DNA of 64,000 nucleotides from Macrostomum lignano (GCA_002269645.1 NIVC01000109.1:855670-919669), one strand, 5' to 3'. Positions 37,490 through 64,000 are shown, counted from the stretch's first letter. Made by a program: numbers and translations. The notes: generated by a model not told the origin, from the letters alone.

Positions 37490-39447
37490 TCACAACCGCA
37501 CGAGAGTGACGAAGGTGGCCGAAGCGTCAGTGGCCAGCCATCGCTCGCCTCTGTCCAAGTGCAGCGACAGCTTTTCACCAGCGCCGAGTCTGCGCACCGC
37601 CTCCAGGCGGGCCTGCGACGGCCCCGACTCCGGGTCGCGACCGCGCTGCACCGCGATCCACTCGGTGTGGCCCACCTGCCACTCCAGGTGAGATGAGTGG
37701 CCGTCTGCGAAGGTCACCTGTCGGTGTGGTGGGTCGTTTTGTTAGTTAATTAAAGAATTGATTGATTGATTGATTGATTGATTGATTGATTGATTGATTG
37801 ATTGATTGATTGATCGATTGATTGATTGATTGATTGATTGATTGATTGATTGATTGATTGATTGATTGATTAATTGATTGATTGATTGACTGATTGAATT
37901 GATTGACTAGTTGATTGATTAATTGATTAATTAATTAATTGATTGATTAATTGATTGATTGATTGATTGATTGATTGATTGATTGATTGATTGATCGATT
38001 AATTGATTGATTGATTGATTGATTGATTGATTGATTGATTGATTGATTGATTGATCGATTGATTGATTGATTGATTGATTGATCGATTGATTGATTGATC
38101 GATCGATTGATTGATTGATTGATTGATTGATTGATTGATTGATTGATTGATTGATCGAGTGATTGATCGATCGATTGATTGATTGATTGATTGATTGATT
38201 AATTGATTGATTGAACGAGTAAATGAAGTTTGATAAGTTGACGGTCTTATTTATTGACTGATAGAAAAGTGATTATATAACTTTTATATCAAAAGGCATA
38301 AGCACTGGCTGCTGTCTCACCTGAGCAGTCAGCTGGTACAGTCCGGGCTGCTGCACAATCAGGTGCGTGCCCAGCCTCTCAAACTGGAAGCCGCAACGAC
38401 CGCCGTCGTTGGCGCCGTAGACCTCAGCCAGCCTCCAAGGCCCCAGCGCGTTGTTGTCTGCAAAATAGAATTTGTTTTTTTATTAAACATCTTGTAAATT
38501 ATTTTAATTGTAAGTCTCTAAACAACCCTACTAACAGTAAGCGAAAAAGTGAAAGTAGTACTTCAGTAAAATAATGTAGTCTATCATTGGAACACCATAT
38601 ACTAAATTTAGACATATTCGAAAGATATTCTCTGACTAACAGACACTGGAGCTCAGGTAGGTTGCGGATATGGCCGAGTTGGAGCTGTTCTCCGAGCACG
38701 GAGTCGGACTCAAGCGGGGTTGGCCGCACGGTCTCAGTGAGTTCGAGTCCAGCACAAAGGTTGCGTATTTCTAGAATTGCCAATTATGGGTCCATATTAA
38801 ACATATCCATATCTATCTATCTATCTATCCATCTATCTATCTATCTATCTATCTATCTATCTATCTATCTATCTATCTATCTATCTATCTATCTATCTAT
38901 CTATCTATCTATCTATCTATCTATCTATCTATCTATCTATCTATCTATCTATCTATCTATCTATCTATCTATCTATCTATCTATCTATCTATCTATCTAT
39001 CTATCTATCTATCTATCTATCTATCTATCTATCTATCTATCTATCTATCTATCTATCTATCTATCTATCTATCTATCTATCTATCTATCTATCTATCTAT
39101 CTATCTATCTATCTATCTATCTATCTATCTATCTATCTATCTATCTATCTATCTATCTATCTATCTATCTATCTATCTATCTATCTACCTAACCCAACCC
39201 GACAGCCAGTGCTTACGCAGCGGTGCAGCATGGAGAAGTGCACAAAGCCGCAGATCCCAAGCGAAGCCAGGGAGCCGAGCAGCAAAACCAGCAGAATCGC
39301 CATTCGGCATCGCTGCCCGCACCCGCCGCCGTCGCCGTCACTTGGGCGAACTTTGCGACAGTCCTGTGGAATCGAGGATTCTATGGAGTATTCGCAGGCC
39401 GGGTTCTCGTGGCATGTTTGCATCAGGTTCTCGTAGGGCCCGTTCAT
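37490..39447 (-). CDS. TNF-superfamily-like ligand 1, type II membrane protein, 4 exons, ~239 aa
   Basis: Exons 39447-39217, 38770-38647, 38457-38321, 37717-37490; total 720 nt, in frame. TM AILLVLLLGSLASLGICGFV; THD-like strands KYATFVLD, ALGPW, HLIVQQPGLYQLTAQVTF, RLGAGEKLSLHL, ATFVTLVRL*. Confidence 0.75.
37755..38215. repeat. (ATTG)n microsatellite in intron 3 of TNF-like 1
   Basis: Tetranucleotide run. Confidence 0.97.
38808..39187. repeat. (CTAT)n microsatellite in intron 1 of TNF-like 1
   Basis: Perfect tetranucleotide run. Confidence 0.97.
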
Positions 39448-39572
39448 TGTTTTGGCTTTGGTTGTGGAAGATTCTGTCTGACAAAGATCGTAGGGGCCTC
39501 AGGTGAAGACTGCAAGATTAAATAGGAAACGAAAAACGAAAAAAACAGTCGCGTTGCCTTACTGGGAGAATT

Positions 39573-39609
39573 GGAAATCCCCTGTTAGCCAGGGAACTTC
39601 CCTTTTATA
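39573..39609 (-). promoter_or_regulatory. TATA box (TATAAAAG, 39609-39602) with two kappaB-like decamers (39592-39601, 39573-39582) for TNF-like 1
   Basis: Motifs read directly: GGGAACTTCC on + and GGGGATTTCC on -. Function is inferred. Confidence 0.45.
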
Positions 39610-40179
39610 CTGTTTGGCAGATGGGGCTTCTCTTTCTCTGCCCTCTCTCTCTCTCCCTCTCTCTCCCTACTCTCCAGTGTACTGTGCAGCTGCGCACAAG
39701 CACTCGGCAGTGTACACTGAGTCCTGTGCATACAAAATGCATTTGCCACATTGTGCGTGCTTTTCTACAACACAAGGGACTGATAAACAAACAAGGATGT
39801 TGAGAAAATAGGACTGAAGCAGCCAGGTGATAAGCATTTGCCAGAGAGCGAACTTCTGAGTCATGTTTGTGAATTACCAAAACTCATCGAAAGCACACAA
39901 CCTTATTGCAGTCATTGAAAGGTAGTTTTATCAGTGCTTTATTATCTTTTAAACTTGACTGGGGTGGTCACAAGGTGTTTTAAAACAAGGTTATGACTGG
40001 AATAAGTGCAGCGTTCGTCTGCGGTTTTTAGAATCCGGAATGACCTGCTATGACTAAATTTAACACAAATGCATACTATTTTTGGAAATGCTTCAATTTG
40101 GCTACAGGAAGTTAAAGCAGCCAAATGCTACCTCCAGAGGCTGTCCTTAGATTACTGTTTCTACTGCATGTCATGTATC

Positions 40180-62075: not shown

Positions 62076-63142
62076 GAAATTCTTTCTAAAACTACCTGAC
62101 ACTTCTTTTTTGACATGACGCTTCTTTCATGTCTGACATGACGCTTCTTTCATATTTGACGACGCTTTTTTATGTTTTGGCTATTCTCGATCCTGTGAGC
62201 CTTGACCTTTCAACAATTCCCACCTGTAAGCCTTGAACTCTTCGCGAATTCCCCCTAACCCTAAAGCCTGGACATTTCAGAAATTCTCCCCAAGTGTTAC
62301 AGCATTAGCGATCCCCCCAAGTCTTGACATTGTAGCAATTCCCAAATGAATCTTCTATGTTCGACATGACGCTTCTTTTATGTTTTATGTTTTCTTGACT
62401 CTTCTTTTTTGTGACTTGACGCTTCTTTTATTGAATTTATCAATAAAACAACTATTAATCATTCAGTTTATCAATATATCAACTATAGTAATCACTCAGT
62501 TTATCAATATACTCAGCAACATTGGAAAAGTCGTGAGCAATTTCTTTTGGACTTGATAAATTCTTTTGGATCTTTCGTATTCTGAAATAAAAGATACGAG
62601 AAAAAACTGAGGGGTTGCTTTAATCCGTCCAACCCTCGCACATGATCTATGTATCAAATATCAATTTATCAGTTTATTAGCATAACGGAATACCAATCCA
62701 CAAGCTATTAATAGACGATATACAATACGATAGCAACATATCAATATATTATCAGCAACTATCCGATCTTCGCGAGTTCATTTCTTTCTAAAGTAAACTA
62801 TTTTCAAGTCCATCGATGCCAGAAACCTTCGCCTTCATTCCGTCAGATGTGGCGCAATCATATTTCTAAAAGCGTTGAAAAGAACTATTAGAAATTTCGA
62901 AAACTGCCAACTGCTAAAGATAATAACGACTGTTTCTAAAAATAGAATCAGTGGCTGTCCGCAGGCTGCCGCTGTGCAGAATCTCGCCAACAGACAGCTG
63001 CTAAATTTAACCATCGGCGCACAATTGGACTCGCGAACTTGCCTCGAGCCTGGCTATTCTTCTGCAGCCTGGCCCGGCACAGACTTCCCAGTTTAGCTCG
63101 AGCTGGATTCTATTTTTGTTGCAACAAGATTTGGCACACAAT

Positions 63143-63208
63143 GGAACGTCCCCTCGGCATCCGTTGGCTGTTGAGGGAAGCAAAGCAGTTCGCCAAACTC
63201 TATAAAAG
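63143..63208 (+). promoter_or_regulatory. kappaB-like decamer (GGGACGTTCC on -, 63143-63152) and TATA (TATAAAAG, 63201-63208) for TNF-like 6
   Basis: Motifs read directly upstream of the ATG at 63311. Confidence 0.45.
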
Positions 63209-63310
63209 AGGCGACAGCTTCGACTAAAAAAAATTCAACCAAAAATTGCTTGCAAAGCAGAAGCAGACTTGCAAAGACAGCGGAATAAACATCTTCTCTT
63301 CAAAGCAACA

Positions 63311-64000
63311 ATGTCCCACCAGGCTCAATCGCTTCTTCTGGAGGCTGGACACGCTGAGCGTCAGCAGCCGTCGGAGCCGTCCGCGGTGCCCGCCGCCGGT
63401 CCTAAACCGGCCGCCGAGACGCGCCGTCATCCGCGGCTGCTGCTAGCGGCGGTCGCCGTGGCAGCCTGCGTCCTGGGCGCTCTGGCCATCGCTGGCGGAG
63501 CCACTCAGGCGGCCACAGCTGAAGCCAGCAGCAGCGGTCATGACTCGGCCAATGTGAGTCATTTTGTGAGTTATTCTTTCTCTTCGAGAAGTCCTTGGCC
63601 GCAGAGGCTCCCCCGTCCGCTTTTCAGTGGATTCTGCTCCGACTGACGCACAAGGGTCTGCCCCCGTGCTCATCAAACTACAGCGGAACTCTCTGCTGGG
63701 GAGCTGGGGAGATCAATAGCAGAGGTGAGCTTGCTGAATATTCGCAGTCAACCGAGTGCAAGCCCCAACGACATTTACCTTTCGTCTCCGATTCCAGAGG
63801 GCACCAACAATGTCTTGGTGGGGCCATGGACCTCAGACGGTGGGCCTGCAGCACCCAATTTTGTCCTGCTAAATGACAGCTCGTTCGGGCTACGGGTCCT
63901 GAGCCCCGGACTCTACCAGGCAGTGCTCCAGCTGACGGCTCAGAACCACAACGGCAGCTCTCCGGTCAATCTTGAGTGCCGAGTCAACCTCGACGGCAGA
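63311..64000 (+). CDS. TNF-superfamily-like ligand 6, type II membrane protein, 3 exons seen, truncated by the window end
   Basis: Exons 63311-63553, 63628-63724 (97 nt, same length as in TNF-like 5), 63798->64000. TM LLLAAVAVAACVLGALAIAG; WILLRLTHKGLPPCSSNYSGTLC; VLVGPW; LRVLSPGLYQAVLQL; LECRV. Confidence 0.75.

Follow-up and report, generated by a model that had tools for sequence, protein, structure and literature searches.

We analyzed a 64-kb window of DNA from the Macrostomum lineage of free-living flatworms (64,000 nucleotides (nt); NIVC01000109.1:855670-919669), called "the window" throughout. Positions 37490-64000 hold six TNF-like loci whose predicted proteins share one design, an N-terminal hydrophobic segment and a C-terminal beta-rich domain. 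The whole is best explained as at least six tandem paralogous genes encoding TNF-superfamily (TNFSF) ligands, a reading to which we give a probability of about 0.8. An earlier note on this DNA had listed six genes with the coordinates and strands given below, and we confirm all six loci. In the list, aa stands for amino acids, ORF for open reading frame and THD for TNF homology domain.

37490..39447, minus strand: g1, TNF-like, four-exon model, 241 aa
39447..39217, minus strand: g1 exon 1, cytoplasmic tail and transmembrane anchor
38770..~38641, minus strand: g1 exon 2, strand A and the Cys motif 'ATFVLDSNSLRPCGQPRLSPTPC'
38457..38321, minus strand: g1 exon 3, GPW ... GLYQLTAQ
37717..37490, minus strand: g1 exon 4, the remaining THD and the stop codon
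48590..49342, plus strand: g2, TNF-like, uninterrupted ORF, 250 aa
51778..52572, plus strand: g3, TNF-like, uninterrupted ORF, 264 aa, with the architecture of g2
56021..57557, plus strand: g4, TNF-like, tentative two-exon model (56021..56113 and 57096..57557), 184 aa
60462..61361, plus strand: g5, preferred model of 285 aa (60462..60909, a 42-nt intron, 60952..61361)
63311..64000, plus strand: g6, TNF-like, incomplete at the window end; exon 1 from 63311, exon 2 from an acceptor at 63684

In g2, a transmembrane anchor at about residues 38-56 is followed by strand A with a C...PCW motif and by a THD that extends to the C-terminus. The second exon of g1 was discovered through a weak match to a hidden Markov model (HMM) of flatworm TNF ligands (E 0.1 on its own), and its motif 'ATFVLDSNSLRPCGQPRLSPTPC' is the same strand-A/Cys motif that is found in g2 and g3. 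The remaining three genes, g4, g5 and g6, have a common exon layout, with the hydrophobic segment in the first exon and the beta-rich THD in a later one. The preferred g5 splice junction reads CAG/GTATGC ... TTCTTGCAG/AT, with the first-exon ORF open as far as the donor; an alternative donor at 60681 would give a protein of 209 aa. The g6 anchor covers about residues 43-61, and exon 2 of this gene reads 'ELSAGELGRSIAEVS ... VGPW ... GLYQAVLQ ...'. The preferred g5 intron (60910-60951, GTATGC...TTGCAG) is 42 nt long and that of g6 may be 57-147 nt; such very short introns, in g5 and perhaps g6, coexist with satellite-filled introns of about 1 kb.

When the 885 stop-to-stop fragments from a six-frame translation of the whole window were searched with an HMM of the domain alignment, the six loci were matched at E-values between 1e-14 (g6) and 5e-49, and the next match had E > 0.08, which leaves no seventh locus. 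Paralogy is evident between g2 and g3 (35% identity, E 7e-25) and between g4 and g5 (46% identity, E 3e-34), and a weak BLAST connection (E 1e-3) joins the two pairs. Four motifs occur once each and in identical order in every complete gene: GP[W/L], G[LV][YF]x-h-x-[AS]Q, h-x-AG[DE]x-h and a terminal F-x-x-h strand. The second motif deviates in g3 (R for Q) and in g6 (L for [AS]). The window proteins also have the conserved aromatic and hydrophobic residues in strands C and H.

Topology was judged by a simple hydropathy test only. An N-terminal hydrophobic 19-mer in every gene exceeds the usual membrane threshold, with Kyte-Doolittle maxima of 1.98-2.89; the peaks of g1, g2, g3, g5 and g6 reach 2.38-2.89 and lie at residues 38-84, and that of g4 reaches 1.98 at residues 4-22. 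The hydrophobic stretch of g4 begins at residue 4 and might therefore act as a signal peptide instead of an anchor. By this test, the array proteins would adopt a type II topology, with an N-terminal anchor and a C-terminal extracellular THD, and g4 might be secreted instead.

The gene models required no in-frame stops or frameshifts, and in every complete copy the reading frame is open, splice sites are canonical, and the hydrophobic anchor and all core THD motifs are present. GC content at third codon positions (GC3) in the domain exons is 0.74-0.86, against a GC content of 0.47 for the window, and the proportion of nonsynonymous differences (pN) is below that of synonymous differences (pS) in g2/g3 and in g4/g5; together, the GC3 values and the pN < pS relation in both close pairs indicate maintained coding sequences. 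The earlier note had described a shared motif order and a hydrophobic N-terminal segment in each gene, and both descriptions hold, with the minor substitutions in g3 and g6. Its proposal of an invertebrate array of tandem genes that is specific to the lineage and diverges fast is supported as well, and it had expected the array to continue past the window edge. Since g6 is clipped by the window end, 'at least six' genes is indeed the correct count. The array's origin is best explained by local duplications, several times over, after which the copies diverged very fast in sequence.

Profile, fold and family-HMM evidence supports the identification of the array proteins as type II ligand-like proteins with a TNF homology domain: all three lines point to TNFSF and none to C1q. 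We aligned the domains with MAFFT, trimming the misplaced first part of the last g1 exon, and compared the resulting six-domain profile with all chain sequences in the PDB. This profile matched EDA-A1 (3.8e-6), Spodoptera Eiger (6i50; 8e-6) and a single-chain APRIL/BAFF fusion (1e-14, three domains summed), followed further down by BAFF, 4-1BBL, CD40L, RANKL, GITRL and TNF. All 60 chains listed were TNFSF ligands and none was a C1q chain. A profile of g4-g6 alone matched EDA at 5e-4 and also GITRL. Searched as a single sequence against the PDB, g2 gave matches to flagellin and a thioesterase, which we rejected as spurious. Single-sequence methods are inadequate at the divergence of this array.

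Predicted structures gave the same family. The AlphaFold2 model of the C-terminal 129 aa of g5 has a predicted local distance difference test score (pLDDT) of 74.5 and a predicted template modeling (TM) score of 0.70, with pLDDT < 50 at residues 103-116. In a Foldseek search against the PDB, its best 50 matches were all TNFSF ligands (TM about 0.5-0.56), among them TNF, 4-1BBL, Eiger/Grindelwald 6zt0, EDA, GITRL, CD40L and FasL. The model of the g2 ectodomain, built on a two-sequence alignment, is poor (pLDDT 56.9), and its best 50 Foldseek matches were likewise all TNFSF ligands, with TM of 0.40-0.48. These models suggest that the THD is a beta jelly roll whose nearest fold neighbors are TNFSF ligands, a result in which we have moderate confidence because of the shallow alignments behind them.

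The third line of evidence is an HMM whose only input was the set of flatworm TNF ligands in Data S3 of Bertevello et al, 2020 (PMC7519573). Run against the six-frame translation of the window, it matched g3 at 6e-17 (HMM positions 5-232), g2 at 2.6e-8, g5 at 8e-7 and g4 at 8e-4; two g1 exons scored 2e-5 and 8e-4, and g1 spliced without the 38770 exon scored 7e-13. The six loci top the ranking (E-values are given for g1-g5), and the other window fragments were not below E 0.09. Overall, the PDB profile, Foldseek and the flatworm-ligand HMM agree with the earlier note's proposal of a TNF homology domain of type II ligands. That note had also named a best profile or structure match to a non-TNF fold as the outcome that would speak against it, and the 60 PDB matches listed and the best 50 Foldseek matches are all TNFSF.

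Pfam gave a mixed answer to the profile comparison against PF00229 and PF00386 that the earlier note had suggested. TNF (PF00229; gathering score 23 bits) was the sole family matched by the four-exon g1 model (19.7 bits, the best of the six), by g4 (15.6 bits, E 0.015, and 14.1 bits) and by the C-terminal exon of g5 (13.8 bits, E 0.057), and no C1q match was found in the window proteins at the loose cut-offs of E <= 10 or E <= 1; all TNF scores lie below 23 bits. We also searched 1.84 billion representative proteins by HMMER, using a domain profile with exon-wise rows, and retrieved only 33 proteins at E <= 1e-3. The single-domain matches among them are M. lignano proteins labeled 'TNF_2 domain-containing' in UniProt and insect TNF-domain proteins, and most of these single-domain matches pass Pfam TNF.

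Several results weigh against the assignment of the array to TNFSF ligand genes. None of the six window proteins reaches the Pfam TNF gathering score, and Pfam TNF gave nothing for g2, g3 or the spliced 285-aa g5 model. A two-sequence profile of g2 and g3 found only Eiger in the PDB, at a non-significant E of 0.37, and g1 alone found nothing among PDB sequences; what supports the assignment of g1, g2 and g3 is the joint profile, together with the flatworm-family HMM and a model of low confidence. TM-scores against solved ligands are modest (0.4-0.56). In the search of representatives, long metagenomic proteins, each repeating BclA_C/C1q/TNF-like domains 3-8 times, had the highest whole-protein scores, so that the profile alone does not sharply separate the branches of the C1q/TNF superfamily; the PDB sequence and fold results do separate them. 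As for the genes themselves, the exon-intron structures of g1, g4, g5 and g6 are predicted, and searches of public assemblies for the exact g2 and g3 proteins returned no record. Finally, the ratio of nonsynonymous to synonymous substitution rates (dN/dS) is high, about 0.45-0.7, and near saturation, which makes it weakly informative and leaves room for relaxed constraint on some copies.

The domain-repeat proteins at the top of that search include P0001, P0003, P0010 and P0011 (ENA metagenome, 805-1466 aa), which are apparently microbial and carry tandem BclA_C/C1q/TNF-like jelly-roll domains, one of them with a GDSL lipase fusion.

These points bear on three rival explanations. Some copies could be decaying or unexpressed duplicates, in effect young pseudogenes, with a functional repertoire smaller than six, which we regard as unlikely. 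Extreme divergence between copies at a dN/dS of roughly 0.45-0.7 would suit such decay, and the array proteins lack a record in a collection of 15 billion proteins that includes transcriptome assemblies. Moreover, g4 has almost no cytoplasmic tail and harbors a short interspersed element (SINE) in its intron, within a locus that is 47% tandem repeat. Set against this are the intact frames, canonical splice sites, anchor and core THD motifs of all complete copies, models built free of any frameshift or in-frame stop, and a GC3 that reflects a maintained codon bias.

It is distinctly improbable, in our judgment, that the proteins are true THD proteins with partners other than an endogenous TNF receptor (TNFR), be they other receptors, glycans or targets in other organisms, possibly in an arms race. 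Very fast divergence of the paralogs would fit this idea, as would receptor-contacting loops that are the most variable and worst modeled parts (g5 residues 103-116), but no sequence feature indicates a non-TNFR partner. A single receptor with several ligands is common in the TNF family, as for BAFF/APRIL with TACI. Each platyhelminth species has been described as having one NGFR-like TNFR, with a predicted death domain, and several ligands (PMC7519573), an imbalance that favors other partners; however, up to 19 wengen-type receptor homologs are counted in a platyhelminth (bioRxiv 10.1101/2024.07.27.603686), so that receptor scarcity is itself disputed.

Least probable is that the domains belong to another C1q/TNF branch, gC1q-like or BclA-C-like lectin or adhesion domains, and serve in pattern-recognition or structural proteins rather than as TNFR ligands: the proteins fall under the Pfam TNF threshold, the top whole-protein profile matches carry BclA_C and C1q Pfam domains, and C1q-domain proteins are greatly expanded in many invertebrates (PMC10672478), but those long bacterial-type matches score through 3-8 summed repeats, C1q appears neither in Pfam nor among the 60 PDB sequence matches listed nor in the best 50 Foldseek matches of either model, and the type II anchor, the GxYx-h-x-[AS]Q motif and the terminal F-x-x-h-x-x-L-G align with EDA and APRIL. 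Like gC1q proteins (PF00386), which are often expanded in invertebrates, the window proteins are predicted to have the superfamily fold, a trimeric jelly roll. They differ in having a type II anchor rather than a clear signal-peptide architecture and in having no collagen stalk, as no Gly-X-Y (collagen-like) region occurs in any gene model.

Taking the array as TNFSF ligand genes, we compared it with the ligands already published from flatworms. Identity to any of these is only 22-33%. The best BLAST match of g3 is M. tuba comp64136 (25% identity, E 2e-8), and those of g4 and g5 are insect TNF-domain proteins. None of the published flatworm ligand sequences corresponds to a window gene, neither of two M. 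lignano annotations holds a match to a window protein at >=90% identity, and a word-indexed protein search with the g5 domain found no match. Like flatworm ligands such as Mlig009154g1 (PAA64699.1), the window proteins combine a type II anchor with a C-terminal THD.

Two subfamilies can be told apart. In g1-g3, strand A is followed by a C...PC motif and LGP[LW] ahead of the core THD, as in the M. lignano and M. tuba ligands. This arrangement is absent from g4-g6, which instead have SIAE[VT]...VGPW, with the strand-A motif SIAE[VT] common to all three; no M. lignano or M. tuba ligand published so far shows the pattern, and only an M. ruebushi fragment starts LGPW. Judged by sequence, g4-g6 look closest to EDA and insect Eiger-like proteins, and this GPW/SIAE subfamily looks less like the published Macrostomum ligands. 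EDA, APRIL-BAFF and insect Eiger provide the best sequence-profile matches of the window domains. The C-terminal '...F-x-x-h-R-L-G' end of the window proteins resembles the 'TFFGAIRLG' of EDA, and a Cys in strand F aligns with that of EDA and APRIL. The window proteins lack the collagen stalk of EDA and show no obvious furin site, and identity to the EDA, APRIL-BAFF and Eiger group is <=29%. Their likeness to Eiger is one of sequence similarity and does not establish orthology.

The array consists of new members of a known family and is not a new system. Repeated duplications of TNF ligand homologs are already known from the free-living flatworms Macrostomum lignano, M. tuba and Microdalyellia (PMC7519573), and the M. 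lignano TNFSF genes group together in an invertebrate-wide phylogeny (bioRxiv 10.1101/2024.07.27.603686). Elsewhere, up to 27 TNFSF/Eiger paralogs occur in a mollusc and up to nine in a cnidarian (bioRxiv 10.1101/2024.07.27.603686), and in tunicates tandem duplication, both frequent and independent, has produced up to 14 TNFSF genes (PMC12843592). The earlier note's suggestion of an undescribed system does not survive these reports, and the single Eiger of Drosophila, which it took as its baseline, is the wrong one in view of the documented flatworm duplications and mollusc, cnidarian and tunicate expansions. Like those expansions, the window array comprises multiple, fast-evolving, species-specific paralogs; unlike them, it belongs to another phylum and its paralogs are all missed by standard Pfam thresholds. 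What is new is the genomic picture of a tandem array of six or more genes in the Macrostomum lineage, its extreme divergence, with six genes below the Pfam threshold and <=33% identity to published flatworm ligands, and the EDA/Eiger-like GPW/SIAE subfamily.

On this reading, each gene encodes a short cytoplasmic tail, a single membrane anchor (g4 being perhaps secreted), a stalk and a C-terminal THD folded as a ten-strand beta jelly roll. By analogy with the family, the THDs would form homotrimers, and possibly heterotrimers between close paralogs; the ligands could act membrane-bound or after shedding, and would signal by clustering TNFRs with cysteine-rich domains. The predicted death domain of the flatworm NGFR-like TNFR makes JNK, NF-kB or apoptotic outputs plausible. 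An immune or regeneration role for the array would be a matter of pure inference. No TNFR gene was noticed in the window, where no search with a TNFR model was made.

According to a current hypothesis, parasitic flatworms have lost the TNF ligand that was once theirs and sense host TNF through a single conserved receptor; the free-living Macrostomum is a reference point for this ligand-loss idea. In the Macrostomum lineage, the ligand family exceeds the published set in both size and divergence. Since the six genes lie below the Pfam TNF threshold and none is a published sequence, claims of 'no ligand found' that rely on Pfam or BLAST thresholds should be checked again with profiles specific to the lineage. 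The array also offers concrete candidate cytokines for RNA interference and in situ work in a regeneration model. A bolder proposal, that of a flatworm-specific TNF-ligand radiation that includes an EDA/Eiger-like GPW subfamily new to Macrostomum and has diversified far beyond the receptor repertoire, seems doubtful to us. Were it true, many ligands would act on one p75/NGFR-like death receptor, or on new receptors, and would serve a regenerating flatworm model in neoblast control, regeneration or immunity; domain thresholds would systematically under-count flatworm ligands, possibly also in parasitic species reported as ligand-free. Otherwise, the array is one more lineage-specific TNFSF expansion, tandem as already documented in tunicates.

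Outside the array, the window contains a gene that serves as a synteny anchor:

31841..34988, plus strand: glycosyltransferase gene (Gly_transf_sug, DXD motif), Pfam 1.3e-11

We compared the window by BLAST with five M. lignano loci around TNF-like genes and with a further record that overlaps one of them on its contig. Over four to five exons, the glycosyltransferase is collinear with a homolog in three of these M. lignano records (L004, L005 and L006), at 44-61% aa and 68-82% nt identity. There, the homolog lies directly upstream of the TNF-like gene Mlig030035 (P0041), and the published ligand Mlig009154 (P0006) follows about 10 kb beyond. M. lignano NIVC01001726.1 and two sister contigs carry the glycosyltransferase, a 21-bp satellite family and adjacent TNF-like genes, as the window does. 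By this comparison, the array locus is homologous, whether as an ortholog or a paralog, to the two-gene TNF-like locus Mlig030035/Mlig009154, since the flanking glycosyltransferase and the satellite family are common to both. The sampled M. lignano locus differs in having two TNF-like genes, with an unrelated gene between them, where the window has six or more.

Mlig030035 itself (10001-11693 of L004/L005/L006, 268 aa) is annotated as a 'hypothetical protein' with no precomputed Pfam domain. The window profile matches it at E 2e-4, and Pfam TNF gives a sub-threshold 13.6 bits; it looks like an unrecognized TNF-like gene that the published list of flatworm ligands does not contain. Upstream, the glycosyltransferase homolog bears no annotation.

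The window is eukaryotic DNA with spliced genes, and its content of mini- and microsatellites is unusually high. Tandem arrays make up 45.6% of window bases and 46.7% of 37490-64000, and nearly every intergenic or intronic interval carries its own mini- or microsatellite. Large arrays lie at 23599-28278 (a 16-bp unit x 294), 40178-46654 (20/28-bp units, 6.4 kb) and 10290-11743, and a 21-bp minisatellite at 49720-50056 is about 88% identical to its M. lignano counterpart. The SINE in the g4 intron (56713-57032, plus strand) is tRNA-derived, with a tRNA-like head at 56713-56782 (Rfam tRNA 27.9 bits, slightly under threshold), a body of about 250 bp and an (ATT)n-rich tail to about 57075; copies occur in all six M. 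lignano locus records at 80-93% identity (best 93.4%). A 700-bp element at 3612-4308 is 93.9% identical to positions 18765-19464 of the M. lignano record L002; it also matches in reverse at 85.5%, which indicates an internally palindromic element, of the foldback type or resembling a miniature inverted-repeat transposable element. Rfam at gathering thresholds and ARAGORN, both run on the whole window, found nothing.

Additional window genes include an innexin, which points to an invertebrate, and an M28/nicalin-like peptidase. The innexin exon has a single database match, to an innexin of M. lignano (55% identity), and the M28/nicalin-like ORF had no match in the word-indexed protein search. 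This match, the shared repeats and the collinear glycosyltransferase tie the window to Macrostomum, and a vertebrate (fish) origin was rejected on account of the innexin and the M. lignano repeats. Repeat identities of 93-94% speak for closeness to M. lignano; the 44-61% aa identity of the flanking glycosyltransferase and the lack of protein matches at >=90% in either M. lignano annotation speak against simple identity. The window would thus be DNA either of a congener or of a divergent, unannotated paralogous segment in M. lignano. Tandem repeats yield many long spurious ORFs, even within the nicalin-like gene (9.7-11.7 kb) and the innexin gene (19.8-22.0 kb).

One of the profile matches, P0014 (172 aa, Pfam TNF), adjoins a second TNF-like ORF on a contig of 66.6 kb (L007; Logan SRR29078107), where the pair occupies 10001-10519 and 10521-10994. 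Bro-N genes abound on this contig, and it also encodes a homolog of baculovirus p74, which points to a nudivirus- or baculovirus-like large DNA virus with a tandem pair of TNF-like genes.

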